A stretch of 63,178 nt of DNA, counting the filler, from Lenisia limosa (Eukaryota > Protista > Breviatea), in the NCBI GenBank assembly GCA_001655205.1. It is 8 parts of 8 records of this genome, joined end to end, with 100 filler letters (N's around TTAATTAATTAA, not from the genome) between each part and the next. Parts side by side here need not be neighbours in the genome. Positions count along the whole stretch, not along the records: positions 35,964 to 63,178 come from LPNZ01009902.1; 7 more parts are not named here. One strand, written 5' to 3'. The position numbers and the translations under genes were made by a program. Positions within the stretch are counted from its first letter, which is position 1; the number at the start of each line of letters is the position of its first letter. The notes under the pieces were generated by a model. That model did no database searches. It saw only the letters and a program-made list of their open reading frames with translations, and had not been told where the DNA came from. Shown piece after piece: positions 35,964 through 62,731 of the stretch.

Positions 35964-38900
35964 GCGAGGGTTGACAGGCGTTTCTACAACACCGTAGCCC
36001 ATCACTCCAGCATACTGAAAAACAAACAAAAAAAAAATATTATTTCAAAAAATCGAGAGGCAAGAACCCGAAAAAAATAGGGGTAACAGGTCAACTAACC
36101 TTGAAGAGACGGTCACTAAAGATTTTGGGTTTAACATCCATAACAACGGACTCTCCAGTGTCGCCTGGGATCACAAGGCGGCCCTGAAAGGTCAATAGCA
36201 AGCCACTTGAGAAACAGTAAAGGGGGATTCAGACCTTATGAGTGGCAACCATCTCCTTGAAGAGCTTCTTCTTGAGAATCTCATTCTTGCTGTTGAGAAG
36301 AGACTCCCAGGTCCGGTCGTCAACCAAGGACTGCCCGCCAAAAGCGAGGGTCGCCAGCCCCCGTGTTCGACCCTCAATCTGAAGAGTAAGCCCTGTGCAA
36401 CACATTGTATATCTTGAGCGCACCCAGCACACCTTTTCAAAGAGCGGACGGCCGATGGCACCGGGTTCGCCGGTGGTGATGGACATTCCGACCCGGAGGC
36501 CACGCCAGAGCCACCCTGGATCCTGCGAAGTGAGCACATTGTTGGGGGGGGGGGGCAGCAAAAGAAGACTGAAGCTTACACGTTCGAGGGGAACTTCGGC
36601 CAGGGTCTCATGGAGGGATTTGAGCACAGTAGGCCAACGAACGTGTGTAAGGGCAACCTAAGAGGGTAAGGGTGGAATGTCAAAGACTGAGCAAGGTGAA
36701 ATAACTAATTCACACCTGCATCTTGAGAACGTATTGCAGCGCGTCAAGAGGATTGTCGAAGCCACAAAGCATCATGTCATGCTGTACACTAAACTATGTC
36801 AACCTCCACAGAGCCATATCCAAAGAAATGATCCAAGACCACATTATTATGCCACACGCAGCTCACGCAATCTGCGCTCCATCAAGCTCCGGAAGGGACA
36901 TAGCCAGACGCTCCATACAAACGTCACGTGATGTCTGCACCACCTTCGGACTCAAGTTCTCAAACACAGTGAGCCCGTCGATCCTGAGGGCAACGCACGT
37001 GACCTGTCCCTTGAACAGCGGGCTTTCGGTGAAGTCAACCTGCCGCCGTCAAGACAGCAAAACGAGGATGTAACGGGTTGACAAGAATAACAAGGGTATT
37101 AAACCCATTGATGCATACCGACTGTGGCATGACCGAGAAGAAGCGGAATCCTTGGAGGCCATCCTTGCGCTCAAACATCATGCTATTCGTTCCGACAGGC
37201 AACGTCTCTGATGCCGTGCCCTGCTTCTTCTGCAAAGTCAGTCCTCAAAAGATGGAATTCTGCAAAGGCCTATGAAACAATTCGGCCGCAAACCGCGACA
37301 AGGTCGAGTTCAACTTGTCTCAGCTGATTCTGTTTGTCTTGCGCTTGTTGCTTGCGGTATGTTTGGATCTAAGCAGTGAATCAGGCATTTCCAAGAGCCA
37401 CAGCCCCNNNNNNNNNNNNNNNNNNNNNNNNNNNNNNNNNNNNNNNNNNNNNNNNNNNNNNNNNNNNNNNNNNNNNNNNNNNNNNNNNNNNCCCCAAAAA
37501 ACCCCCCAATATTCGATTTTTTGGATGGAAAGAATACAGCTTACCTCTTTAATGAAAACGATGGCGAAGATGAGACAGGTGAAGAAGATGAGGGCCCACA
37601 CGACACAGATCAGGAACCAGTGCGAGAAATTATTTGGCATACCAGCCTAATGCAGTTAAAAGGACAGAGTAGCAGTAGCGACACATACCACAAAAGCGAG
37701 GGCGAAGAAGAGAATCAAGAAACTACTGGCTAGAGAGAGCGTTTCAAGTTGAATGAGTGTCCATCTTTCATGAGGCTTTGCAAAGAGATGCAACCTAAAT
37801 TGTCAGAAAATGAAAAGGAAAAGAGTGCGGTCTGCAATGGTTGAGGACATACGAGTAGAACAGGAAAATAGCAAGAAGACCGAACATGATTTGGAACACA
37901 GTTGTCGTAAAGTAGAGGAAACTGGTCAACACGAGGACCTGAAGAATGAGAATAACGGGAGTTCAGCTACCTTTCTGATGATGATAGTAAGCTCCCAGAG
38001 GTAGCGTCTTCTGTTGTAGCGCAGGTAAAGGGCACTGAACATCATGCGGAACCGAGGCTCGTCAAGTCGATGACGATTCTTGACCAGAATAAAGATCACG
38101 AAGGCTGGAATGCCAAGACCGTATCTGAGTCGTCATTTTTGCAATGATGAACCCATGCTGAATCAAAACGGTAACACACCCAAGGACGCAGGCAGCAACG
38201 AGGGGGAACCATCTCCACCACTCTGTTCCGTAGCACTCATATTCAGGGGCCTCATCCATAGTCATTGTGCCATTGCTCTGAAAGAATTAAAAACAAAAGC
38301 TACGAGGCTTCACGAACCTGTTCAGTGCACTTGAAGAACATAAGGGCAGCGATAGTGATGAGGGGATAGAAGAGGGTCATGAAGTAGACGAACACATTGA
38401 TACTTGCAGCGGCAAAAGTCCGGCGGAACACCTGGTAAGATCAGATATTGCGACAAAGGCTTCCACAAATGACCCTCAACAAAAAGAAAGATATTCTCAC
38501 AAGAAGGTTTTGGAACTCCAAGCCGCGACGGCGGCGAGATGCGGCTCTTCGGCTCATTATGATCCGCATCAGAATGTTGGCGGCAAGGAAGAAGATGGCA
38601 AGCACAAAGGGGAAGAGGAGCTGCATATGGTAAATCAGGAAATTGTAGGTATCTACCTTGAGCAGGAAAAGCGTAAAGTAAGTTGTCGCGACAATGCAGG
38701 GGATTGCAAGAATGTCCATATTCAGCGAGGCGAACTGCAGGAAGTTGAAAGTGTTCTGCAAGGTTTCAGGCCAGGCATTGACCTGCGAGTAGAACGCCAT
38801 GATCTGGGCCTGAGGGGTCATGTCTGACTACACATGCATACAATTAATATATAGTACATGTGGAAATGAGTGATAATAGAGTGAGTATCTGGCAGAAGCC

Positions 38901-41900
38901 GTCCACATTGATTCCAGTATAAAGAATATTGACTACGGATACATATGATATAATATAATATAACATACATACATAACATACATACATATTAATAGTATAC
39001 TTTTTCATATATGATGTATTCTAGTGTTATCAGTGGGGGCCTCGACACAATGTCGCTAATTCTCAATTACCCCCCCCCCCCCCNNNNNNNNNNNNNNNNN
39101 NNNNNNNNNNNNNNNNNNNNNNNNNNNNNNNNNNNNNNNNNNNNNNNNNNNNNNNNNNNNNNNNNNNNNNNNNNNNNNNNNNNNNNNNNNNNNNNNNNNN
39201 NNNNNNNNNNNNNNNNNNNNNNNNNNNNNNNNNNNNNNNNNNNNNNNNNNNNNNNNNNNNNNNNNNNNNNNGTGCATGATTATCCCATAGTGTAACACAT
39301 TAGGAATACGTGCATGATTATTCTATCTGTTTAAAGATTCCTGCTTTCAAAAAAGGAGAGCCCTCTTACCAACGAAAACGAGCCAAACGTACTGCGGACA
39401 CTCAACACATTCTCCATTAAGCCTTGGAGAGTTACAACACAAAATCCTGATCATCTCCAAGCAGAAATGAAGCGACCCCTCTTAAGAGCCCTCATACCGG
39501 TAGTGGGTCTGCTCAGTCCCGACAGAAGCGCATTTTCCGCAGTCAATGCCCTCGTAACCCTCATCACACTCGTTACGGCCAAGGCATGACTCCGCTGGCA
39601 GGCAATTGTAGAAGACGTCTTCATCATGCTTGTAATATCTAGGGGGGGGGGGNNNNNNNNNNNNNNNNNNNNNNNNNNNNNNNNNNNNNNNNNNNNNNNN
39701 NNNNNNNNNNNNNNNNNNNNNNNNNNNNNNNNNNNNNNNNNNNNNNNNNNNNNNNNNNNNNNNNNNNNNNNNNNNNNNNNNNNNNNNNNNNNNNNNNNNN
39801 NNNNNNNNNNNNNNNNNNNNNNNNNNNNNNNNNNNNNNNNNNNNNNNNNNNNNNNNNNNNNNNNNNNNNNNNNNNNNNNNNNNNNNNNNNNNNNNNNNGC
39901 CGACAGAACAAGCCTCGCAAGGACCGCCGTTTAGGCCGTAGTAGCCCGGTGAGCAGATACACGCGAACACTGATGTGCTGCCCTCGACTAGGGCGGTGGT
40001 GGTGAACTCAGGACACGACGCACATTGGAACACCGGACACGACACACAGGGTTCGTTAGGGAGGTCTAAGGCATTGTCACGGTCATCGTACGTGTCCTAT
40101 TTGGTGAGACTTATGGTGGTATGAAAACGTTGCAGAAAACTGTGCGTTGTGGCAACTGGGTGTGTGAAAATCTTTACGAGGTATCTTGCAATAAAAGCAN
40201 NNNNNNNNNNNNNNNNNNNNNNNNNNNNNNNNNNNNNNNNNNNNNNNNNNNNNNNNNNNNNNNNNNNNNNNNNNNNNNNNNNNNNNNNNNNNNNNNNNNN
40301 NNNNNNNNNNNNNNNNNNNNNNNNNNNNNNNNNNNNNNNNNNNNNNNNNNNNNNNNNNNNNNNNNNNNNNNNNNNNNNNNNNNNNNNNNNNNNNNNNNNN
40401 NNNNNNNNNNNNNNNNNNGGAACCAAGGGGGCATACCGAGCCGACGAGCATGGCCTTGGGCGAACCGTACATGTGACTACCCGCAAACTGTGCTCGGACC
40501 TGAACAGTAAACTCTTGTGTGTTTTGTCTTATACCACAGCATATTACTTGTTTTCTATGATATCGGGTGTAAATGCGAGAAATACCCCCCCCCCCNNNNN
40601 NNNNNNNNNNNNNNNNNNNNNNNNNNNNNNNNNNNNNNNNNNNNNNNNNNNNNNNNNNNNNNNNNNNNNNNNNNNNNNNNNNNNNNNNNNNNNNNNNNNN
40701 NNNNNNNNNNNNNNNNNNNNNNNNNNNNNNNNNNNNNNNNNNNNNNNNNNNNNNNNNCGGAATGATTATGTTGTCTCCGTCCTCGTAGGGCAATTGCCGG
40801 ACTTCAACCTGAACTGTCAACGTGCCTCAACTCCATAAGACGAGGTCCAATACACCATCATTACTTTATATAGCAATGAGAAATAAAACAATAAGGTTGT
40901 ATCATAACTTACTTCAAGGGATTTCCCACGGTCCCAAAAAAAGACTGAATTTCTCGATAAATCCTCGATAAATATCGATATTTTACCGGTCTTTTTCGGA
41001 CCGTAGGGAAGCCCTACTTACTTCCTATAGCACCATATAGACCCCCCCCCCACAGTAAAGTTGCCTGTCCCCAGGACTCCGTCCAGATTCTGGTTGTCGA
41101 ATGCGTCGAAAGGAGTCAGAATGGCGTGAGTCTCCTTGAAGGCGAGGGCTGATGTGAAGGCCGGACCGGTGAGCCGCGAGTGCGGCGCCGACGTTTCACC
41201 CGGTAAGACGGAAAGAGTGACAGTGCCGTTGCGGGATACTCCGGGGTACTTCCCTGTTGTCATTTCGAAGGTCACTTCATAGTCGCCGGCATTGCCTGGA
41301 CTGTTAGACGTTAATTCGATCGAAATATCCACGGCATTGCGAAACTCCATTCTCTCTCACCAATAATGAGCATTGCTCTGTACTGTCCGTCAGTCAAATC
41401 AGTGAGCTCCACTGACTACAAAGGTTAAAGATGAACGATGATCAATGGTTGTTGTCTGTGAAACAAGACTAACCAAAAGAGTTCCGTTGTTGACAGGAAT
41501 ATGGGGGAGCGACCTGGTGCCAGTAACACTGTACAAGGGGTAGACAATTTCTTCCTGCAGATTCTGGGTCTGGAGTGTCTCTCCCCTGAAAAGTAACCCA
41601 ATTGGCGTAAATGCCACTTACGTCTCCAGACTTGTCACGGTGATTTTCCACACGTTGCCTCCCGAGGTTTTGTAGATGCCTTCTTGACTCACAGCCTGAG
41701 AGATAAAGAGGGCATTATACGACTTCTGAGGGGGGGGTTCTTGGGATTAAGAATAAAACAGCCACCAACTTGCAGGATAATTTCAGAATACACGCCAGCA
41801 ACAAGTTCGCCGGGAAGAATGGTCAGAGACTATAGCGATGAAATCCATTCGACAGTTGACGTTTAATGTGCAAATGATACCAAGAGAGATTTAATGTGGA

Positions 41901-44900
41901 CCAAAAAAAGAGGGAATTTCTTGGGGAATTCATGGAATAACTACAATATTTTATCAGCCATTGTTAAAACATCATGGTACCCAATGTAAGCCAACCAAAT
42001 TGGCCTGTGTTGGGACGAGCTCGAATTCGTAAGGGTCGTCATTGACCTGCATGAAGCCCGGTGCGGGATAGGGCAGCACTCCGACAGGACACACACCGCC
42101 GAAGGGACACGGCAAACACGTGTTCTCTGTGGCGTACGTCCCACCAAGACAAACAGGCACAACAGTTCCTAAAGTAGCGGTCAGCATCACCTACATGTAT
42201 ATATGATATATGTAGCTGCAACGCTACGACGCAACAGTTCTCACCGTGGGGGCAAAGGGCACCGTCAGGGCACGGCTTACAGTCCATGCCACCAATGGGG
42301 CCGTAGTAACCCGCAACACAACGGCAGCTACATGGTCATTAAACCGAAGATAATGTAGGGTGTGGAAATGCAGCGGGTTTGTTGATTCATAAACCATAAC
42401 GAGTGAGCTAACCTGTCTTGAGAAATTGCACCGACGTCGTCGTAAGTAGACGACAGCGCGGGGCAGGGTGTGCAGAAAGACGACCCGTTGTTGGGAGCGA
42501 AGGTGCCAAGGTCGCAGGCATAACACTCGATCAGGCCTAGAGAATGACGCAACTAAGAGGGCTTACCCGTGGAGTTAGTGAAGTAGCCCATTGGACAGTC
42601 AAGACATTCGGTTTGACCCAGGGCCTCAGCAGGAGCGTACTGGCCGCCGGGGCAAGCTTGGCAGGCCGCGAGTTGTTGGGGCTCATCAGAATACTGGAGG
42701 GTCAAGACAAGGACCGACGTTACTGCTGGTTTTCGACATTAAACATCCCAAGAACGCTCACCGATCCTCCCGGACAGTACTGACACGGGCCACTCATTGT
42801 TGCTAACTCCTGACCAGGCACACACAGCGGCTGCCAATAGACATACTCCTTGGAGACCAGCAGGTCGTCGAGGCCTCGGATGGTTACGACGAGCAGCATC
42901 GGCCGCGTGACAGCGTACGTCACGTTGTACATGCCGACTCCACCGTAGGTCTGAAACACCTACACCATATCATTATCGGTAACGAGCATCCTTAATGTCA
43001 TTGTGAAACTGAAGGATTCTATCATATACTATATGATATAGAATGAGAAAAAAAATAAAATAAGGTTGTATCTGACCGAAGCTGTCCACACCATCACGCG
43101 AAAGAGATATTGGATTATAGTATAATAATGATTCACCCGATCATTTGCCTTACAACTCTGTACACACAGCTTTCTGCGTGCCTCCCCAGCGTACCATATA
43201 GTCAGCGAATTCTACCAAAGCTGCGCCGTCTGAATCCTCAAACTCCAGCTCAAATCTAGAGGTAAGAAGAAGCGTGCGACGACTTACCGATGATCTACGT
43301 CATCATAAACGTTGTCAAACTGGTCTCTAGCGAAGATGGTGAAGTGTTTCGACCCCTGTCCGACCTAAATAGTTACCATCGAAAGAGTAACAAGAGAAAC
43401 ACACAATTGCGTTTTCCAAAGCGCTTGTAAAAGACTTGTCACTTGGAACACTTGAGAAGATGGTGACGTTGAATGGAGAGTTGGCAATGGCGGGGTAGGG
43501 TGCAGAGGCTCCGAAGGCCTTATAGCGAATCTTGATAAGTCAGTACATGCAGAGTTTGTACAAAGAAGTCGGTCAGCCCACATGGAATTGGAAGACACCA
43601 GCCACAGTCGGGGTGTACTTAATGACATAAGTTCCGTCGTAGCGGTCGTCGTAGGGGACGTTCAGCGTTTGGTCGTCCATTTCAAGGGTCACCTCCCAGT
43701 CGCTTCCGCCTGGTGGTGAGATGCCGGCAATGAAATAGTCTACCAAGTACAAGCCCCNNNNNNNNNNNNNNNNNNNNNNNNNNNNNNNNNNNNNNNNNNN
43801 NNNNNNNNNNNNNNNNNNNNNNNNNNNNNNNNNNNNNNNNNNNNNNNNNNNNNNNNNNNNNNNNNNNNNNNNNNNNNNNNNNNNNNNNNNNNNNNNNNNN
43901 NNNNNNNNNNNNNNNNNNNNNNNNNNNNNNNNNNNNNNNNNNNNNNNNNNNNNNNNNNNNNNNNNNNNNNNNNNNCCTAACAAGATGGACATTATCATGG
44001 ATTTGTGTCAAAATACCCAAAATTTCTAAATACAGCTTCAATAAATATCCGTAGTTTGTTAGTCCTTTTGTGACCACAGGCAATCCTATCAAGTTTGCCG
44101 CATACCGTAACACAGCTTGGCACCAGGGTGGGGAACACACAGATACCCTTAGTTGGGCAGTCTTTGCAGCTGTCACCGCCAGCGGGCCCGTACATGCCGT
44201 ATGAGCACCTAGGTAGGGAGGGGGTGAAATCACATCACTGATAAGCACGGAAAAGTAGCAACTAAGCAAATAAAAGACACGAAAAGAGAGAAATGGCAAG
44301 ATAATGACTGAACTACCAGCATTCAAAAGTACCAATTTCGCCTCGCCTATTCCTACAAAAAGGCCCACAAACAGGCATTCTTCAGAGAAAATAGCACCGG
44401 TGTCCTGGGTGGTCGTGCTATTGGGGCAAATGGTGCAGTTGGCAGCACCTGCAAGAGCGGAATAGGAACCAACCTGAGGTATCAAAGGAAGATTGCGGAA
44501 CCAAAGAAAACAATACATTGCCCAACCCCGAACCGGACAATCTATACAACTTGCAGTACCCGCGTCAGGGTTGTACGTTCCCGGACTGCAANNNNNNNNN
44601 NNNNNNNNNNNNNNNNNNNNNNNNNNNNNNNNNNNNNNNNNNNNNNNNNNNNNNNNNNNNNNNNNNNNNNNNNNNNNNNNNNNNNNNNNNNNNNNNNNNN
44701 NNNNNNNNNNNNNNNNNNNNNNNNNNNNGATTGCTAACCAAGAATACTCCATTCTCCAGCCTTGCATAGTTTGCATGAAGATTGGTCAGCCTCGTTTTGG
44801 AATGTTCCTAATATGGTAAGTCGGCCATGTGACGAGCAAACCGGGTAGACACTGCTCGCATGGGCCGATAGACGAGGCCAACGCCGTGCCGACAAGACAG

Positions 44901-47900
44901 TACGGCCGCCAGATGACAAGGTCCTGAACGCCTTGGGACAGCGGCGTGCCCTGGGCTCGGATGAGGAACCGGACTTCCGCCCCGATGGCAATGTCGTAGT
45001 CTATTTTGTGTGTTCCTGAAGGGTGAGTGGTTGTCCTCCAAAGAAAGTTGCATTAAGTGAAATGAGGAAGAAAAAAAGAGAAAATAAACAGGGCCAAAGA
45101 TGGTTTTCGATTCGAAAAAAGACTGAATTTCTCGATTAATCTTCGAAAACTACCGATATTTTCCCGAACCGAAGTGAAGCCATGTTTTAAAGCTAGCCCA
45201 CCATTGACGACACTGGTGTAAGTCAGGGTGACAGAAGGCTCGTTGAACTCCGGGCATATGTAGCCGTCGGTGCTGTTACTGCAGTAAACCAGGCCGGAAT
45301 TGGCCATGTAGTTGTTATACAGAAGACTGATGGAAAATCCTGGAGAGTCACTTTATTGAAGGGAAACAGGGGGGTTGGCTGCTTATCATCACCACTTGTT
45401 CTGATGGTTCAAACACAAAAGAGGGAATAAGAGCTCACTATAATCCTCATCTGGCACTTCATTGCCCCATTGGTCAACTGCATGAATTTCAAAGGAACCT
45501 GAAGATCCCAGAATCTGAAGAGTTAGAACAATGAAAATGAAGAGGTGCTGCTACGCTCACAACAATTAACAAAGATTGCAAAACCCAGACTAAGCCTACA
45601 AAGAGGCTGTCCATGCCGGTGACATAGGACGTGGCTGAGTGCGGCAGATTCGGTTCGAGGGACACATTAGAGGCACAGCCGATGTTGGACCACTCCAGAG
45701 TGAGGGGGTCCTGCCATTGAATGTCAATTTCGTAGTCGCCTAGCTCGTACACCGCAACATCGCCGCTGTACCTAAACCAGTCAGAAAAGGACTCCCAGGT
45801 GATAGACCATCGATTGTGATCTGCCCAGCTTGATCAAGGAGCCCTGGGCCTACTTTCCAGCGGAATCGGTGACATGGTCAATGCTGACGTTCCAGGGAAG
45901 AAGGTCATTGCCGGCAGTGGGGGTGATCAATGCCCGGAATGCATCTAATCCCTCCTGCTGCACATTGCCAAGACTGTTGTAGGCCTAAAGATGGTAAGAC
46001 TGTTGTAGGCCTGAAGATGGTAAGAAGACGCCTCGTCTACTCAATGTGATTGTTAGGCTGGGTGGATAACAAATGTAGCATGCCAGTTACCACCCTCATC
46101 TTATTTTTTATTTGGTAGTTCGCTTCCCCTCTTTTTTAATAAATAAAAATGTTCTGCAAGAAGTATATATGTGTGTGTACATATGATACGTAATATTATA
46201 TGGTTAAGCTCGAAAATATGTATAGTATATGGCAACCTGTAGATGAACGACGAACGGTCTGCCAGCCTCAGTCTTGTTACCCAGGCCGGAGCAATCCGTG
46301 TTGCCGGGTATCGTGGGGTACAGAATGCATAAGCTGTCAAGAAGTCTGGATAGGGGTTAGCGCTTATTTGACAAATTGTCTTGTCAACAATAACGGTTAA
46401 ATAACGAACGTACCTGTAGTCTGGGTCGCACAAAGGTTCCAACGTATTGGGGAAGACACATGTTGCATGGGGTGGACACACAGTGCAGTTGGTGTCGCCA
46501 GTGGGACCATGCGAACCGGACTGGCATCTAAAATGTAATGATGTCGCCCCTTTGAGAGTAGCACAGAATACAAGCAAAAGAGTCGCCTCCATCCAACATA
46601 CAGGCAGTCATTTACGCTTGTCGACTTCTGGAGAAGCGTGGTTCTGCCATCGATACAGAGCTTGCAGGACGGAAAGGCCTCCTCATCAGCATAAGCGCCA
46701 ACTTCGCAGTCGTCACACACCACGGCCGAAGAGTTGGCCACAGCCGTTCCGACCAAACAAGGGTCACATTCGGCTTGGCCCTCCACTGAGGGGTAGGCAT
46801 AGTAGCCCGGGACGCAAGGCTCACACCCAGGTCCTGCTGTGCCGCCGGGACAAGGCTACTGGATTAGCACCATGTGTCAACATAATCATCATCGAGGCGA
46901 ATACCAAAATCAACAATTAAACTCGCACAACTATGGTATATTCGATCTTCACAGCTATTTGCCCCGGCTTTTCGGCTAACCGAGCAAACGTCAGAACCGA
47001 TATGGAAGGTCTGCTTGCCAGGGGCACATTCAGTGCACTCAGTTGTGCCCAATTCACTGAATTCAGCAAACCAGTTCAAAGGGCATCCTGTACATTCTAA
47101 CAGCTACACGGTCAAAGGCTGGCATGTTGCCTACCTGTGCGGTTTCACTGAACCACCCGGCAGGGCATGGGTTGCAAGGCCCCACGACAGTGTCCAAACT
47201 GAAGCCGGCAAGACAGTGCGGCTGCCATTTTGAGTCGTAGGACGAGGCGTGGAGCAGAGGATTGCCGTCGGCCCTATATCGTTATTCGCTGCCAAAAGAG
47301 CATCAATATCTGAGAGTTAATACCCACCTAATGTCCCATTTCATGAGGCCCATTATGTTGCTTGTCATTGTGATGGTGTGGAGGGGAGCGACAATGGGTT
47401 GATACACCAGCGTGATGTTGGCGGAGTTATCAATACCCTCGCAGGTGGTTGCTGAAGGCGACGTGCCAGGAAGACAGTAAATATCCGTTCGATTGGGGTT
47501 CTATAGTATTAGTGTTGGTACAACCATCGTGGAAACAGAACTAATGAATAGGTTGGACACTGTACCCACCTCCATGTACACGACAATACTGTACTTGAAG
47601 TCGGTGTCAGGATAGTCGTTCCCGAAAGCGTCACGAGCGTGAATGGAAACGGTCAGCAATTCGCCTGTAAGTTTCACTGGCCATGTTGTGGTAATCTNNN
47701 NNNNNNNNNNNNNNNNNNNNNNNNNNNNNNNNNNNNNNNNNNNNNNNNNNNNNNNNNNNNNNNNNNNNNNNNNNNNNNNNNNNNNNNNNNNNNNNNNNNN
47801 NNNNNNNNNNNNNNNNNNNNNNNNNNNNNNNNNNNNNNNNCACCTCAGAGGTGTCCTTCAAATGGCTTGGCAGAGCAGGATTGACGGTCACCGCAAAAGG

Positions 47901-50900
47901 CGACCCCTCGATAACCTTGGTTTCGCCGTAGCCGTTGATGATCGACATTTCAATGCTATACTCTCCCTAGGGTGATATTACTTCAGGACAACATTGGCCA
48001 GTCCAGCAGCCCGCAACTCACCACAATTCTCAGTTCCAAGAAAGCTTCGTAGAGCCCGTTGTCATTGTCGACCTAGGCCTAGTTAACCCATCCAGGAGCA
48101 GCAGGACCAACCGGTGTGTTTTTGACAACGTTGACAGTGTCAGGTCCGGATGCTACTGTGATATTGACTATTTCGCCTCCGCCAACCTGGGGGGGGGGGG
48201 GGNNNNNNNNNNNNNNNNNNNNNNNNNNNNNNNNNNNNNNNNNNNNNNNNNNNNNNNNNNNNNNNNNNNNNNNNNNNNNNNNNNNNNNNNNNNNNNNNNN
48301 NNNNNNNNNNNNNNNNNNNNNNNNNNNNNNNNNNNNNNNNNNNNNNNNNNNNNNNNNNNNNNNNNNNNNNNNNNNNNNNNNNNNNNNNNNNNNNAGTGAG
48401 GGAAATGTTTTTTAAAAAATCCGACTTATTAACGATCACAATCCAATCATAACGCTTAGAGCCGTCCCAAGCATACGACCCCCGAGGGGATCAAAGCTTA
48501 TGGACAGAGCGCGGACCAGACCAGACTGCAGAAAAGATTCTCTACAGGTACGAACAATATGGTGTCAAGCAAACTGTGACTATTCTAAACCATACTGATG
48601 CTGAGCAAAAGAGTAGTAATGGTATCAACAAAAAGTGACTGGGCAAACATAAAGTACAAAACAAACACATACAGCAAACATTATTAAAATTAAAACAACA
48701 GCACAAAAAAAACAAAAAAAAAACAAAGGGGCACAAGTCGAAGGTTAATTAAAAAAAAAATTAGCTGAGGGGAATAATAGCACTTCCGCTTTGAAAAAGC
48801 TCCCCTAGTTAATCTTTGAACCTAGACATTAGACATTGTGACAGACTTGGCGCGGGAATCTGTGGTATACTCTAGAAGATGGAAATACAGAAGCATACCA
48901 ATGTTACTTAATAGCACATGAAAATGTGAAATAAACATTGGAGAAAAAAACAAAACAATAGCACTTCGGTGCTGTATAACTTTACAACTGTTATGAATCT
49001 CACAAATCTACTGAGGTACAAAACAAACCTGGGGGACCAGTTTGGCAAGGTCAGTGAAGCAAGCAATTGGGATGCTCATGGTTCCGCCTAAACCACCAAT
49101 AAGAGAGCCTGCCGAGTACTGGAATGCCCCTCGCTATTAGACCAACCTGCAATGGTATCGGAAGCGACAGTGGCAGTGGCAGTTTCACTGGGGATGACGT
49201 TACACATGGACGTGTTGGCGTGGAAGTAGTAGCCCGGGTCACACGTCGGCTCACGCGACGGAAACAGACACGTGGCATGAAGCACAGGACAGATAGTACA
49301 AGGCCCGCCTGGGACGCCATACCACCCATCGCGGCACAGACACTGCGTTTTGTTGACGGCTCCAAGTACGCCACCGGTGACGGTGTTCTCGGGACAACTC
49401 AGACAGTCTGCCTGAAGCTCAATGGGGTTGTACGTGTCGAGAGGACATTTCGAGCACGCAACAGAGCTGAAACGTGAGGAGGAGCACCAAACTGCTTACA
49501 ATTGTCCGGAGTATTCACCGGCAGGACACGGGTCGCAGAACTCAGTTCCGTTGTTTGGAGCAAAAGCTCCCTCAGGGCACAGAAGGCATTCAAAGAGGTC
49601 TGCGGTGGGGGTGTACTTTCCAGGGTCGCAATTGATGCAGGGACCAACAACACTCTCGAGATATTGGCCATTGTTGCAGATGGGAACCCAGTTGGCGTAC
49701 CGGGATACGAGCTGAAGAGCGTCAGTGTTGGGGCAATGGAATAGAGTTAACCCACCTTGGTGTCATCGGCAACGAGAACAATTCCAACTTCCCACACTCC
49801 TGGCGAATGCCCAGTGTAATTCAGGCTCCAATATCCTTTGCTGTCAGAACTCTTAGGCTCCTTACCATTCCCCTCGTTGATAAACTCGTATGTGATATCT
49901 CCTGGTTCAGCAAGCTGAGAAAAGGGCATCAATTTAAACGTCACATTCAGCTCATGGTATCCTAAAGAGTCATGTTTATCGCATTCCGAGAACAAACCGT
50001 CAACTTGCGCGTCGTCGTAAATATCATAAGTTAAAAAACGAAGATATCTACAAAGTCAAACAGCAATATTTGTGAAGCCTCCATGCGCTCGCCACTCACT
50101 GCGACTCCTCAACAGTCCTGTCCTCAAGCAGAGGGAACGAAGCATTTGTTGGCCCTGCTGCTGGCTCATGGGGGTAGACCTGGAGAATAAGTATCGCCCA
50201 GAACCTCAAGCCCAGATAACTCTGGAATCCCGGCGCACATAGAACCAGTTTCTTTCGGTACCATCTTTGTAGTGCGTGACTTCAGCACCATCACTGATGC
50301 GCCACATGTAGTGGGTGTAGTTTCCTAAAAAGTAAGATCCGGCGGAGAACTAACCGGAGGCGAGGGTCAAACTATAACGGTGCCTGTAGGTGCTTATCCA
50401 CATGTTGCGGTTACTGTATTTCAAAACTCCTCCTCTAAAAATGTGTCAGATAGAAAAAGTCAACTACTAACTCTTCGTATAAGTTGAACTTGTAGTCCTC
50501 CAGTTGATACTGCAGGTAAGCTTTTTCTTCCGTTTGGGTGACACACTCCAGTCTGCACGATAAAATCAGAAAACACAGGAGTCACACCAGTCAGCTAGAC
50601 AAACCTGAACCGCACTCCTGACAGTGGGCGAGCGGCGTCAGGTCTCCAAAACGTGTTATTGACGCTCACGGCTCCAACCGACTGCCGCGTAAAATGGAAA
50701 AACCAAAGCCTACCTGGAAGTGTTTGGTGGGGACTTCAATGGTAGAGAGAGGGTCTGTGATATTTTGGATGTAAAGCTGGAGACAGTTCCTGAAGAGGTC
50801 AATCGCTTGGCAAGGCAAGGGATGAAACGTACCTGTTCCAACTGGTGTACAGCCAGATGTCCACGGGATGGAAGCCCTCCGTGAGATACTACAAATAAGA

Positions 50901-51596
50901 TCAACCAATAGCTAGCCTACAATGTTGTGCTGCTGGCCATCGGACATACAGAGCGTGTGGCTCTCAGGGAAGCCGAAAGTCATTGTACCTAAACGTCAGA
51001 TGACGCAGACGACCAACCAATCGTTGCGTTGGCTCCCCTCCTCGACTCCATTGAAAACGCATAAGTGCCGTTTCCTTCAACTGAAATCTCTCCTAGACAA
51101 TAAAAACGACTTTTGGTCACCAACCCGTTGCCCGCATGAAGAAGGCGTCTCTGTAATACCAGGGGCGATATGGGATTGTGGCTTGATGATGGATGATATG
51201 GTCGGCGGGAAGCGTTTCATTGGGGAAACTGTTCTCAAAGTAGGAACCATGGTACAGTTCCAACTTAAGCCCGTATACGTGGCCATCTTTGAGTGGAGCA
51301 ATGTAGGCTGAGGAAAAATGAACATTTCGACTGTTTAAAAAAAAACAGGAGATGAAACCGATCTTTAAAGAAAAAATCTAAAAAGCTGATTTAGGACAGG
51401 AAAGCTGGGAGAAGGCATGAGATGGAGGGCCTTGAAGCCATAAAGTTGAAGAAGAACCAATCACAAAACCAAGCCTAAAATTACAGGTAAATTTTAAGCA
51501 TTTGATAATTATACCCTGCTTACAGAAGGCAACAACTTGTCCTGTGAAAAACAGCAACAGCGACAGAATCAATGGAAGCCCCATTGTAGCCTTCAT
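35964..51596 (-). CDS. Giant receptor-like membrane protein: signal peptide, filamin/Ig-like domains, GCC2/GCC3 (ephrin-receptor-like) Cys-rich repeats, multi-TM domain, class III cyclase-homology domain
   Basis: Signal MKATMGLPLILSLLLFFTGQVVA at 51596. Filamin-like YDGTYVIKYTPTVAGVFQFHVG, KVIEGSPFAVTVNP, GVGMYNVTYAVT. Cys repeats CSPGTYNPDAGTASCIDCPVGSYSALAGAANCTICP, CDPCLVGTAVANSSAVVCDDCEVGAY. TM region 39400-37500 with YGLGIPAFVIFIL...FSALYLRYNRRRYLWELTIIIRK. Cyclase region LWRGLRVGMSITTGEP...LAFGGQSLVDD. Many exons lie in N-gaps; the 3' end is lost at a join. Confidence 0.8.
36100..37040 (-). other. Adenylyl/guanylyl cyclase-homology domain exons of the giant receptor
   Basis: Spliced KGQVTCVALRIDGLTVFENLSPKVVQTSRDVCMERLAMSLPELDGAQIAVQHDMMLCGFDNPLDALQYVLKMQ...DPGWLWRGLRVGMSITTGEP...IEGRTRGLATLAFGGQSLVDD...GRLVIPGDTGESVVMDVKPKIFSDRLFK. 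Collinear with the class III cyclase pattern VTxVFTDI / GDAFMVAF / GLRVRMGIHTG / NxAAR / GGQ. Confidence 0.8.
40916..41016. mobile_element. hAT-like MITE (family 1), full-length copy with perfect 8-bp TSD
   Basis: Ends AAGGGATTTCCC...GGGAAGCCCTA, flanked on both sides by CTTACTTC. Core AAAAAAGACTGAATTTCTCGATAAATCCTCGATAAATATCGATATTTT. Confidence 0.8.
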
Positions 51597-51945: not shown

Positions 51946-54900
51946 ATGTCTTACGGACTTAGTGAGTTCTAAGCCTTATATCGTGATTTAACATTCAGAA
52001 AACATCTATGCTGCCTGCCCTAACACTATCCGTGGCCAAGCTCACCATATGGGAGCTCACCCCAAGAAAAACCAAAAGTTTCTGTATTGCTGTGGAAACC
52101 ATGTTGTTATTCGTGACATGAAGGTGGGTAACTTGTGTATCTGAGTATTGTCATTTAAATAGGACCCTCTCATCTCCGATGTTTACTATGATCATTCTGC
52201 TCAAACTACTGTCGCTCGTTACTCCCCTTCTGGATACTACATTGCTTCTGGAGGTGAGTCAGGGCGGTGATACATTTTATTTCTTCTCCTCGCGCCTGAT
52301 TTTCAAATTTTGTGATTCCCCTAACATGATTGCAGATGTTACCGGTACCATCCGTATCTGGGATACTGTTAACGCTGAGCACATCTGCAAAATTGAGCTT
52401 CGGTTTGGAATGGGTGCAAAGGGGAAGATGCCTTATTATTATTATTATATTCCTTTCTCACGGAGCAGCCCTCTCTCAAGCCAGATTACTGACATTGCCT
52501 GGTCTGAGGATTCACAGCGCATTGTTGTGTGTGGTGAAGGCAAAGAATGGTATGTGTGGTGTTCAAAAGACCAACTTATCCTTTAGCTTCTCCAAGGTAT
52601 TTGTCTTTGACACTGGTGCCACCATCGGTGACATGTCTGGACACAGCAAGAACATCAACTCTTGTGATTTCAAGCAGGTAAGCCGGACTATGGTTCTTCG
52701 CTATTGATATGTCGGTTTTTACAACCAAAGTTTGAAATAAACGATTCCGTGATTTCTGTTTAGACCCGTCCCTTCCGCATTGTCACCGGTTCTGAGGATC
52801 TCAAGGTTGGTGCATGAATTAATAATCTCATTCTCATATCGATTGTTTATAGTCCAGGTCAACTTCTACCAAGGCCCTCCTTTCAAGTTCAATACCAGCC
52901 ATTCAGTGAGCAGAATATGGCTTTCTACTAACATTTGCCTGTTATCATGTTCGAACCTCCTATTGACCGTTTGTAGACTCATGAGCGTTTTGTGAACTGC
53001 GTCCGCTTCTCTCCCGACGGTACCAAATTCGTTTCCGTCGCCTCTGACATGAAGGTAAGGCATTTCCCCGTGCTAGACGCAACCGAAATTTCGTTTCTAC
53101 TATTTGACACAAAAGCTTCTCCCTATGATGGTTTGTAATGATGTCAGGGATTCCTCTATGACGGCAAGACCGGAGAGGCTCTCGAGACTAAACTGGAAGG
53201 CCACACCGGCGCCATCTACGCGTGTGCCTGGTCGCCTGACTCCAAGAAGGTACGCCACGGCACACTTTGCAGAGCTCTGTTGATGACCAACAAAGATTAA
53301 AAGATACTCGTGACCAAAATAGAATCCGTTTTTCTGGTACTTTCAAGGTTTACTGTGTTTGTAGATTGTCACCGCTTCCGCTGACAAGACTCTGAAGATC
53401 TGGAATGTTGAAGACGGCGCTTGTGAAAAGTGTGTTTGTTTTCTTTTTCTATTTCAAACATTTGACTGTCTATCTGTTCCAACTCTTTAGCACTCTCACC
53501 CTTGCCGCCAAGCCCACTGTTGATGACATGCAACTCGGCGTTTTATGGCAGGCCGACACCATCATCTCCGTTTCCTTCAACGGCAACCTCAACTATTTTA
53601 CTCCTGTACGCTTCTTATGATCCAAAATAACACCAAAAAAAAACACGGAAAATTACGCTACAACCATACATGTGTGTATATCTTGCATTTGTTGCCTCTC
53701 CATGTCCACACGTCACAACCTAGGGACAGGACGGTATGCCTACCCGCGTGTTAACCGGACACAACAAGAACGCCACGGCTGTTGCCTTTGATGCGGCCAC
53801 TAACATGATCTTCTCCGGATCCACTGACGGCAAACTGTGTACGTTGTCTTGACGCACACCAAGGTCTCACTCTCCAGGCTCATGGAAGCTCGGTGAAGGA
53901 TGTGGTCCTCGCTTTGAAGGAAAGATGCCCACTTCCAAGGTCGTCCAGATGAAGGTGAGCCACAGGCTTGGATTCCGCTTTTCTCACCTCTTAGGTTGTT
54001 GGTGATAAGCTCTACGCTGCTTTCAATGCTGATATTCTCGAAGTCATCAACACTTCAACTTTGAAGATTGGGTGGGTAATACTGGTTGATACACCGCTCT
54101 TTGATATGTTGTTTNNNNNNNNNNNNNNNNNNNNNNNNNNNNNNNNNNNNNNNNNNNNNNNNNNNNNNNNNNNNNNNNNNNNNNNNNNNNNNNNNNTCAG
54201 CCCTGTGCGTTGCTACCGACGGAACTGTTGCGGTTTCTTGTCTGGGCGGCCAAGTGAGCTTCTTTTCGTTACTTTGAACAAATCGTGACAGTCCCTTATT
54301 AGTCAACTGTTCTCTCCCATTTATCATCGTACCAGGTCACCATTATTCGTGATGGAGCTGTTGTCAACACTATTGAAGTCAAGTACACCCCCCACGTACG
54401 CTGGAGTGATGGGATGCGGTGCTGCAGAGCGACAGGCCTAGGCTTTGTTTGTTTTGTTGTCATCAACCCTCGNNNNNNNNNNNNNNNNNNNNNNNNNNNN
54501 NNNNNNNNNNNNNNNNNNNNNNNNNNNNNNNNNNNNNNNNNNNNNNNNNNNNNNNNNNNNNNNNNNNCCACGCTATGATGTCATGTGATTTATTTTTCTT
54601 GTACCTGACATTCCAGGCTGTTTCCATTCGTTCCGACGCTTCCGAAGTTGCTGTTGGCTCAGACACGGGCAAAATCCACATCTACTCCCTCAAGTGAGTT
54701 CTGCAGTCTCAAGTCTCACTCTCCAGTGGCAGTGATCTCACCGAGACCAAGACCCTTGAACACCATCGTGCTGCTATCACCGCTCTGTCTTATTCGAAAT
54801 GTGGCGCCTGGCTCGCAGCCTCTGATGCCAAAAGAGAGGTGGGACTGCTGGTTAAACAATGTAGAAATGGAACATCAAACTCACTTTTCAATAAAAACAA

Positions 54901-55361
54901 GACCGTCACTTCTCTGATTTTTGTGTCCGGTTTCATTGCATAGGTTGTCGGGTGGTTCACTGAGACCTTCGAGGCCAAATTGACTGGATGGTGCTTCCAC
55001 AGCAGCAAGGTTCTTGACCTTGCATGGGACGAGGATACTACTTACCTCGCTTCTGCCGGACTTGACAAGTTGGTCATTGAGCTTTTGGATTTTAGCATTG
55101 TTTTTTATGACTTGACCATTTAGCAATACCTTTATCTGGAGCGTTGAGAACCCCAAGACTCGCATCAACATCAGACAGGCTCACCCCGGTAAGAAGATGC
55201 CATTTTTGCTGATGACTTCTTGTTTTCTTCTTTGGTCCACTGCTGCGCTGAGTGGATATTAACGTGTTACAGGTGGAGTCAACGGAGTTGCCTGGGCCGG
55301 CAAGGACCTTGTGACTTGTGGTGCGGACTGCAACATCAAAACTTGGACTATCAAGCATTAA
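51946..55361 (+). CDS. WDR1: Actin-interacting protein 1 (WD40 repeat, WDR1)
   Basis: [18 protein letters not shown]..., [113 protein letters not shown], ...[12 protein letters not shown]. About 19 exons. Confidence 0.95.
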
Positions 55362-55429
55362 GTCTTCCTTTATCACCTTTATCAATATAATATTTATCTA
55401 TACATTACTACTCGTAGTCACTCTACTAC

Positions 55430-60838: not shown

Positions 60839-62731
60839 ATGGGTGCGTCATGGCTCATTGGAGTGTGCATCTCCCTCGTGTCATCAACAATTGTAAGTAC
60901 CTACCTGTTCTCTTTTTTGACAACTCAGTTGAATATTGGTGTCAATATGCAGAAATATAGTCATCTTCAGGATCAGCAGAAGCCAATTGAGCGAAGAACA
61001 CCTCCATGGAGGGTATGGTGAACCAATATTGTTTTCTTAGGTTATTCGTATAGAGGCCAAGATGGTTATGTGGCATGGGTATTTTTGCACTTGGGAACGC
61101 AGGAGACTTTGTGGCCCTTGGATTTGCTGCCCAATCTCTTCTTGCTCCCCTTGGCTCTATTTCTTTGGTTTGTGTTACATTAAAGGACTTCTCCTGACCC
61201 TCCAGGTTGCTAATGCGATTATTGCACATTATTTTCTTGGTGAAACATTCACCATCAATGACCTGTATTCCACAATCACCATTATTTCCGGAGCCACGAT
61301 CACGGTAATATTTTCTGACCATGAAGAAAGAGGTACGTCACATTTCTACTATGACAAATATGTAAATATTCGGCTAACATCCACAGACTATACTCTAGAT
61401 GAACTACTTGACCTTTACAAGCGGCTGATTTTTGTGATCTACGCAGTGTTCCTGTTCTTCTGCATCGCGCTTCTCTACTCGGGATTTAGAATTGTAAGCC
61501 AAGTTTTCTTGGGGTTGAAAGTGGGAGACCATTATTTTTTTTTTTTGAAGACTTAAAAATTCACTCTAGCCGCAAATAAAAGTTGTCACCAAAGCCAATT
61601 TCACTTCAAGGTCAACTTGATTTTCTAACTTAAAACAGTGTTATAATTGGATACCACACAATAATACAGCCACTTTCGTGGATTTGGCAATATTGTAGAT
61701 TTGGACTTGGGGCATAAATATATAAATAATGTATAAAAAGAAAAGTAAAATAAAAAAAAACTGTTCCTGAATAGACCCTCCAAAAAACTAATGGTCTCTC
61801 GCTTTAAGGAGTATAATAACGGTTACAGCTTGGATCATTCCATAAAGAGAACCACCATAAAACTCTTGTCAACAAACTACTTCCGTTCTGTACTGCAGGA
61901 ACCGGAGCTCTGATAGGTTCCATTACCATTCTCACAGCAAAATCAACGTACGTTTGTTAATTTGCAAACTAAATCCAATAGAAGCGAACTTTTTCAAACG
62001 TCTTTGAAGGGAGATAATCAATTTGTACACTACTACGCTTTCATAATCGTTATTGTTTTCATTTCAACTGCGATTGCACAAGTAAGGAGGAAGCCAACAA
62101 ATTTATCTCTTAGGTTTATTGGATCAATGTTGGTATTGCAATGTTTGACTCTCTATACGTTATTCCTGCATTTTACTGTGTTTGGACAGTTTTTGGTGTT
62201 ATTGGAGGGTCAGGTAAACTCACTTCTCAATCCTATTACATCCAGTGTATTTTGATGAGTTTTCGCACTTTGGGACCCTCCAGTTTATTTTCTTCCCTAT
62301 TGGAGTCTTTACCACCCTTCTTGGCGTTGTTCTGCTTTCTAGACGCAAAATGACAGGTTTGTGCTGTTTTTAGACTTACCCCCTAGTTCGAGCATCAAAG
62401 TGGGGAGTTCTCCGAGCAGTATTCAAAATAAGGTGAGCTGACTGAAAAAGAAAGTGTTTAATTTGCAATAGCCTGAGATATCGACATAGATTTTTTAAAA
62501 AAAACACCTCGTAATAGGTGGTTGAAGACAGATTCGAATCTATACTGACAGTTTAGAACGGATTTTTCGAGGCGAGAAAAGCTTCGCCCCTCGTCTGACC
62601 AACAAAAAGTGGATCTGAACTCTGGTTCACTCGATCAATTGTTTGACGCAACGGAACCAAGGAATACAGATATTGAGCTTGAAGTGATTGATGATGATAT
62701 TGATCTTGGAAGCAGATCAAGCCAAGACTGA
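60839..62731 (+). CDS. NIPA-family (DMT superfamily) magnesium transporter
   Basis: MGASWLIGVCISLVSSTI / LNIGVNMQKYSH / WLCGMGIFALGNAGDFVALGFAAQSLLAPLG / VANAIIAHYFLGE...GATITVIFSDHEE / YTLDELLDLYKR / MFDSLYVIPAFYCVWTVFGVIGG; acidic tail ending ...GSRSSQD*. Confidence 0.88.

Follow-up and report, generated by a model that had tools for sequence, protein, structure and literature searches.

A very large surface-receptor gene of Lenisia limosa resembling the CRMP class, with a tail that may hold a degenerate cyclase-homology fold

A CRMP-like receptor gene

The minus strand of positions 35964-51596 carries a protist surface-receptor gene of very large size, in a 63,178-nucleotide stretch of DNA from Lenisia limosa (assembly GCA_001655205.1); this whole stretch, eight parts joined by filler, is called the window, and all positions count along it. 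We favour, with a probability of roughly 0.55, the reading that this one gene specifies an adhesion-type receptor resembling cysteine repeat modular proteins (CRMPs) described from apicomplexans and ciliates, with a tail whose fold may be that of a degenerate cyclase-homology domain. The product would be a multi-pass surface receptor in type I orientation, with a signal peptide, four to five repeat units, a membrane-proximal cysteine-rich region, nine transmembrane (TM) helices and a cytosolic tail of about 350 amino acids, in that order. In each repeat unit, beta-rich filamin-like modules would be joined by cysteine repeats of the Ephrin-receptor-like (GCC2_GCC3) kind, with an EGF-like cap. 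Within the tail, a short polar helix and a linker would lead to an alpha/beta domain, globular and about 230 amino acids long, and this to a Pro/Ser-rich end. The fold of the domain would be of the cyclase-homology (palm-like) type, strongly diverged and degenerate in its catalytic site, and its output role would then be dimerisation or partner binding, not cyclase activity.

The layout of the gene was read directly (Table 1). It runs from the ATG at 51596 downward past position 35964, the edge of the piece, and is interrupted by many introns, mostly tiny (32-90 nt for most). No coding chain was found when the plus strand of 35964-51596 was read. Contigs L121 (7050 nt, without N), L122 and L123 of another public assembly, ENA ERZ3820729, are 99.96-100% identical to the window and fill assembly gaps within the gene. 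On L121 the last tail exon continues into a Pro/Ser-rich end, and the stop is read about 180 nt past the piece edge, near L121 position 3271.

Ectodomain and membrane core

Pfam PF07699 (Ephrin_rec_like, formerly GCC2_GCC3) matched eight stop-free pieces of the ectodomain above the cut-off, with E-values of 3e-5 to 3e-12, and one additional piece more weakly (E 1.2e-3). The beta-rich pieces carry filamin-like motifs recognised by eye, G-x-Y-x-[IV], GSPF-x-V-x-V and D-x-[FW]-GN (examples being GEYSIEMSI...GSPFAVTVNP, GDYEVTFEM and HARDAFGNDYP), and no match to Pfam filamin (PF00630) was obtained in any of them. An AlphaFold2 (AF2) model of one filamin-like piece, made from an alignment of internal repeats, was all-beta but of low confidence, its pLDDT of 47 being insufficient for a fold search. 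In the membrane-proximal cysteine-rich exons DUF7630 scored 23.5 bits (E 6e-5), under its cut-off of 27, and DUF7631 matched weakly (E 0.013).

Exon reading and hydropathy gave nine hydrophobic helices once the gap within the first of them had been filled from L123. RNA contigs of run X1 were spliced exactly at four predicted GT-AG introns in the TM block. Because a signal peptide is combined with an odd number of helices, the N-terminus would lie outside the cell and the C-terminal tail in the cytosol. Pfam returned no family match for the TM exons and no match to 7tm_2, GAIN or GPS in TM or membrane-proximal pieces, and a PDB search with TM and membrane-proximal exons was blank. Searching the ESM Atlas with a TM exon retrieved clusters of eukaryote fragments only; a PF06011 (TRP) assignment at 0.79 was treated as a lead only.

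Beyond the last helix, the TM9 exon (phase 0) is joined to a 25-amino-acid exon (phase 0) across a GT..AG intron, and the frame stays open through the eight exons that follow the 25-amino-acid exon, to the stop. Two of the tail introns, 36523-36579 (57 nt) and 36379-36432 (54 nt), are themselves in frame and stop-free, and the frame would therefore stay open if they were retained.

An original prediction, made from the sequence alone, had described one co-oriented exon chain with a signal peptide, several blocks of GCC2/GCC3-like Cys repeats, a bundle of 7-9 TM helices and a short coiled coil. Its quoted motifs all read on the minus strand, the TM motifs among them at 37971-38124. The exon chain and the blocks of Cys repeats were borne out, the N-terminus following the ATG is signal-peptide-like, the hydrophobic helices number nine, and a Gln/Lys-rich, helix-like exon is present where the coiled coil had been placed. 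The filamin/Ig folds of the same description fared less evenly: beta-rich modules with filamin-like motifs are there, but they match no Pfam family.

Table 1. Features of the receptor gene, in order from the ATG, and bridged assembly gaps
Feature	Positions	Strand	Basis or remark
ATG and signal-peptide-like N-terminus (MKATMGLPLILSLLLFFTGQVVAF)	51525..51596	-	direct reading
Beta-rich filamin-like module 1	49750..50055	-	motifs only; no Pfam match
First Ephrin_rec_like (GCC2_GCC3) block and EGF-like cap	49091..49762	-	PF07699, E 2.7e-12 and 3.9e-9
Filamin-like module (GEYSIEMSIINGYGETKVIEGSPFAVTVNP ... HARDAFGNDYP)	47504..47966	-	reading; no Pfam match
Second Ephrin_rec_like block	46400..47103	-	PF07699, E 3.2e-5 and 1.1e-10
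Filamin-like module (GDYEIDIQW ... FEIHAVDQWGNEV)	45392..45833	-	reading; no Pfam match
Third Ephrin_rec_like block	43976..45000	-	PF07699, E 1.1e-9 and 1.2e-3
Filamin-like module end and fourth Ephrin_rec_like block	42331..42959	-	PF07699, E 1.6e-7 and 1.1e-8
Filamin-like modules (GDYEVTFEM ... LTPFDAFDNQNLDG)	41021..41617	-	reading; AF2 all-beta
High-copy repeat inside an intron of about 245 nt	40870..41020	-	run X2 contig depth; repeat family D2 alignment
Membrane-proximal cysteine-rich (EGF-like) modules	39485..40096	-	DUF7630, below cut-off
Exon LNGECVECPQYVWLVFV, start of TM1	39370..39422	-	reading
Remainder of TM1 (VLIGGGVVLSALSLLLM...)	gap 39084-39271, read on L123 3799-3895	-	L123 reading
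TM2 to TM9, eight exons	37545..38827	-	reading; hydropathy of in-frame translation
TM2-TM9 exons, part 1	38657-38827, 38501-38620, 38318-38431, 38180-38277	-	reading
TM2-TM9 exons, part 2	37971-38124, 37853-37938, 37689-37794, 37545-37646	-	reading
RNA-confirmed introns	38278-38317 (40 nt), 38125-38179 (55 nt)	-	run X1 contigs
RNA-confirmed introns	37937-37968 (32 nt), 37793-37850 (58 nt)	-	run X1 contigs
Intron of true length 145 nt, holding gap 37408-37491	37369..37544	-	L121 bridge
25-amino-acid Gln/Lys-rich helix-like exon (IQTYRK...LDLVA)	37294..37368	-	reading
37-amino-acid linker exon (KKQGTASETLPVGTNSMMFERKDGLQGFRFFSVMPQS)	37119..37229	-	reading; no family match
Seven exons, putative cyclase-homology-like domain	35964..37039	-	reading; chain test; hhalign placements
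Putative domain exons	36867-37039, 36716-36788, 36580-36657, 36433-36522	-	reading
Putative domain exons	36235-36378, 36100-36183, 35964-36014	-	reading
Gap, true length 67 nt, intron	47698-47840
Gap, true length 81 nt, intron end and in-frame exon start	44592-44728		L122
Gap, true length 77 nt, coding and donor site	40596-40757
Gap, true length 63 nt, coding	40200-40418
Gap, true length 225 nt, exon end and intron of about 179 nt	39653-39898		L123
Gap, true length 124 nt, second half of TM1	39084-39271		L123
Gap, true length 54 nt, inside the 145-nt GT..AG intron	37408-37491		L121, 100% identity on both sides

The tail domain and the cyclase profile

The tail was searched exon by exon, in pieces, and compared with a cyclase profile of 42 sequences taken from bacterial cyclase genes with an FADIVGFT motif. 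A chain test linked exon-wise local alignments to this profile, as BLAST links high-scoring segment pairs. With unaligned columns penalised, the seven tail exons reached z values of 2.5-3.4 (P about 0.001-0.01). Scores at or above that observed were obtained with 0-3 of 400 shuffles, 1-12 of 1500 windows of real non-cyclase bacterial proteins and 14-18 of 300 permuted exon orders; the reversed profile gave the same as the null, and four unrelated profile blocks gave z values from -0.1 to 1.7. The best chain comprises profile columns 1-57, 65-84, 85-108, 109-129, 137-167 and 172-191, in exon order. Of the single exons, only that containing LRVGMSITTGEPGAIG beat its shuffles, 1 in 200 of which reached its score.

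With P 0.15 and 0.16, hhalign aligned the two larger tail pieces to columns 12-45 and 109-162 of the cyclase profile, where they would be expected. Two short pieces, one on register and the other (the e6 piece) off it, were uninformative, and the ESM Atlas gave nothing usable for a 142-amino-acid tail piece. Part of one stop-free tail intron was likewise aligned to the cyclase profile by hhalign. The chain-test signal appears real but weak, and a class III cyclase domain on the tail is possible but unproven.

Several results weigh against the favoured reading. Pfam searches of the tail exon pieces, PF00211 included, gave no match even at E ≤ 10, a PDB search of the same pieces was blank, and the 42-sequence profile found nothing significant when run against the tail exons one by one. 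Only chance matches were returned by tblastn of a tail piece against plasmids, and tblastn matches showed no enrichment on the tail exons. Over the tail pieces hhalign gave P 0.15-0.56, none of them significant, and the AF2 model of a 142-amino-acid stop-free tail piece had a pLDDT of 43, too low for a fold search. When columns could be skipped freely the chain test gave z values of only 0.4-1.0, and its skip penalty was picked after that result had been seen. On the side of the membrane core, a phmmer search with a 128-amino-acid TM piece against 1.84 billion representatives returned only P0001, an open reading frame (ORF) of the bridging contig itself; a 51-amino-acid TM exon found no candidate relative in a word search and no relative in a scan of JGI metagenomes. 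RNA contig coverage is absent over 35964-37700. The reads behind contigs L121-L123 and run X2 may also underlie the window, so that these assemblies are not fully independent of it, and the scaffold joins at 43758-43975 and 48203-48394 are unbridged.

The alternative that best survives, though we think it doubtful, is that an unrelated alpha/beta domain of another family occupies the C-terminus and resembles a cyclase only because its hydrophobic strands and glycines happen to fall in a similar pattern. This would explain the blank exon-level searches, the hhalign P values, the off-register e6 piece and the low chain scores with free skipping. It agrees less well with the penalised full-length chain, which does better than shuffles, windows of real proteins, permuted orders of the exons and the reversed profile, or with the length of the domain and the order of its segments, which fit the whole cyclase profile.

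Comparison with known receptors

In its plan the gene matches the CRMP class, a likeness of architecture. As described in the excerpts of PMC9815656 and PMC9670195 drawn on here, CRMPs (for example Plasmodium CRMP1-4, Toxoplasma CRMPa/b and Tetrahymena CRMP1/2) are found in apicomplexans and ciliates and combine repeats of Ephrin-receptor-like and EGF-like type with a nine-TM core, the N-terminus being outside; there are similar proteins in Dictyostelium, for which similar TM cores are predicted. The same excerpts discuss CRMPs as analogues of adhesion G-protein-coupled receptors (GPCRs), thought to sense outside contact and relay it through the nine-TM core to a cytosolic tail. Rhoptry discharge and host invasion in Toxoplasma require CRMPs, as does mucocyst release in Tetrahymena, according to the part of PMC9670195 used. 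The Lenisia gene shares with CRMPs a large ectodomain, Ephrin-receptor-like repeats, nine TM helices (the number in the apicomplexan proteins), an N-terminus that would be outside, a tail that would be in the cytosol and a proposed sensing role of the adhesion-GPCR kind; its cysteine-rich modules by the membrane may correspond to their EGF-like ones (PMC9815656, PMC9670195, as excerpted). Where the CRMPs described there bear Kringle, lectin or MAR domains, this gene has filamin-like modules instead, and the excerpts of PMC9815656 and PMC9670195 contain no mention of a globular cyclase-like tail domain.

Three kinds of class III cyclase were compared: trypanosome receptor adenylyl cyclases, metazoan receptor guanylyl cyclases and rhodopsin-guanylyl cyclases. 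Common to these and the Lenisia gene are an outside sensor, a membrane passage, a short helix and, after it, a domain of matching length, here with segments collinear with the cyclase profile. Unlike them, the gene gives no significant family match and lacks key catalytic residues in the best alignment; it has nine TM helices of a different kind, and its ectodomain is far larger. Rhodopsin-cyclases combine seven or eight TM helices with a coiled coil and a cyclase. With metazoan adhesion GPCRs the gene has in common an adhesive ectodomain, giant and modular, that sits on a multi-pass core, but it differs from them in having nine helices, not seven, and in the blank 7tm_2, GAIN and GPS searches.

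These comparisons bear on the remaining claims of the original prediction. The architecture it took to be unusual is less so, a Cys-repeat ectodomain on a nine-TM core being that of the CRMP class as set out in the excerpts of PMC9815656 and PMC9670195. Its class III cyclase domain was not upheld, as no exon-level search was significant and only the collinear chain test beat its controls, weakly. Of the contact- or mechano-sensing receptor coupled to cyclic-nucleotide signalling, the multi-pass receptor with a giant ectodomain stands, but the coupling to cyclic-nucleotide synthesis is unsupported, several catalytic residues being absent from the best alignment.

A natural fusion, in which a CRMP-type nine-helix contact receptor carries a genuine cyclase-homology tail, either a working cyclase or a regulating pseudo-cyclase, seems improbable to us. 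A literature search for cyclases fused to GCC2/GCC3 proteins found nothing relevant. If such a fusion were real, it would tie CRMP-type receptors, whose downstream signalling is otherwise open, directly to cyclic-nucleotide signalling. Cyclic nucleotides control exocytosis in Toxoplasma and Tetrahymena. A free-living relative with a CRMP-like receptor fused to a cyclase-type domain would then point to a missing link and provide a testable hypothesis; how CRMPs transfer their signal into the cell is an open question in the field, as stated in the excerpt of PMC9670195. As the evidence stands, the receptor part appears unexceptional for a protist class that is widespread, and the cyclase link is a weak statistical signal.

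Probable continuity of the transcript

Since the splice sites and phases fit and the frame is open, one transcript would run through to the end of the tail. It is decidedly unlikely that two genes are present instead, one for a receptor ending after TM9, the other for a small cytosolic protein that starts at the Met-Met of the linker exon. Such an arrangement would suit the tail exons, which are without RNA coverage, the 145-nt intron, which is longer than most introns here, and the in-frame ATG in the linker exon. It is opposed by the canonical GT..AG ends of that intron and its matching 0/0 phases, by the TM9 exon, which ends without a stop, and by the 25-amino-acid exon, which is open, has no start codon and is flanked by good splice sites on both sides.

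Catalytic residues

The best alignment pairs the first metal-binding Asp of the cyclase profile with Arg (VALRIDGLT against LFADIVGFT), a pairing valid only if the alignment is right. At two further sites the chain alignment leaves the columns unaligned: the second metal Asp (GD) pairs with HD by hand only, and the substrate Lys is Ala by hand extension only. The catalytic Asn is Glu in the chain alignment or Gly in the alignment made by eye, and one alignment retains the transition-state Arg where the other has Leu. An active cyclase in the tail is unlikely because the best alignment lacks several catalytic residues, and the domain, if related to cyclases, is probably not an enzyme.

Very little credence is given to a functional receptor cyclase of the adenylyl or guanylyl type, whose ectodomain would sense contact and so turn on cyclic-nucleotide synthesis in the tail. 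The weak collinear match to the profile would be in keeping with it, as would the polar helix, which lies ahead of the domain where cyclase signalling helices sit. With Arg at the invariant FxDIxGFT aspartate, Ala for the substrate Lys and Glu or Gly for the Asn, however, all that is left is the second metal Asp and perhaps the Arg, and PF00211 is not matched.

Assembly gaps

There are nine assembly gaps within the gene, of which seven were bridged and found to be intronic or in frame, with the reading frame preserved over each (Table 1). For three gaps a 2966-nt contig of run X2 gave identical lengths. That the ectodomain and TM parts come from different loci, joined as a scaffold chimera at a high-copy repeat or an unbridged gap, can hardly be credited: the gap at 40596-40757 adjoins a repeat matched by about 3000 run X2 contigs and two gaps are unbridged, but L123 runs without N from 43303 through this repeat to 39148, L121 continues after it, the 2966-nt contig overlaps both, and module types and strand agree on either side of the two open gaps.

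Runs of 11-16 G or C occur at or near every scaffold gap edge, for example at 37492, 39083, 39652 and 40595, and account for the assembly breaks. Similar runs are present at L121 1640-1655, L122 150-165 and 3595-3610, and L123 2253-2265; a pure C-run precedes the terminal AG of several introns, and in some a G-run follows the initial GT. Exact frame counts at these runs are therefore uncertain.

Contig L121 was reached through the phmmer match P0001, which is an ORF call on the same DNA in the other assembly. The public ORF calls on L121, L122 and L123 read TGA as Trp (P0001 has W at TGA): the eukaryotic DNA of ERZ3820729 had been run through a caller of bacterial style using code 4. The database 'proteins' of that assembly are therefore artefacts that run through introns.

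Intronic repeat and neighbouring genes

The intron bearing the high-copy repeat at 40870-41020 is about 245 nt long, against 32-90 nt for most introns of the gene. The repeat itself is about 100-150 nt long and lies in at least three introns, with more copies near 45115-45166 and 44010-44061. About 2958 run X2 contigs were placed on a 5937-nt stretch, with a summed depth of about 96000 in the repeat's bin, and RNA contigs also carry the repeat. It may be a miniature inverted-repeat transposable element or an introner-like element.

Two other genes were seen in the same part of the window, both on the plus strand. A multi-exon WD40-repeat gene at 52100-55400 is divergent from the receptor gene and begins about 500 nt upstream of its ATG, and a gene for a NIPA-type magnesium transporter lies nearby at 61040-62350.

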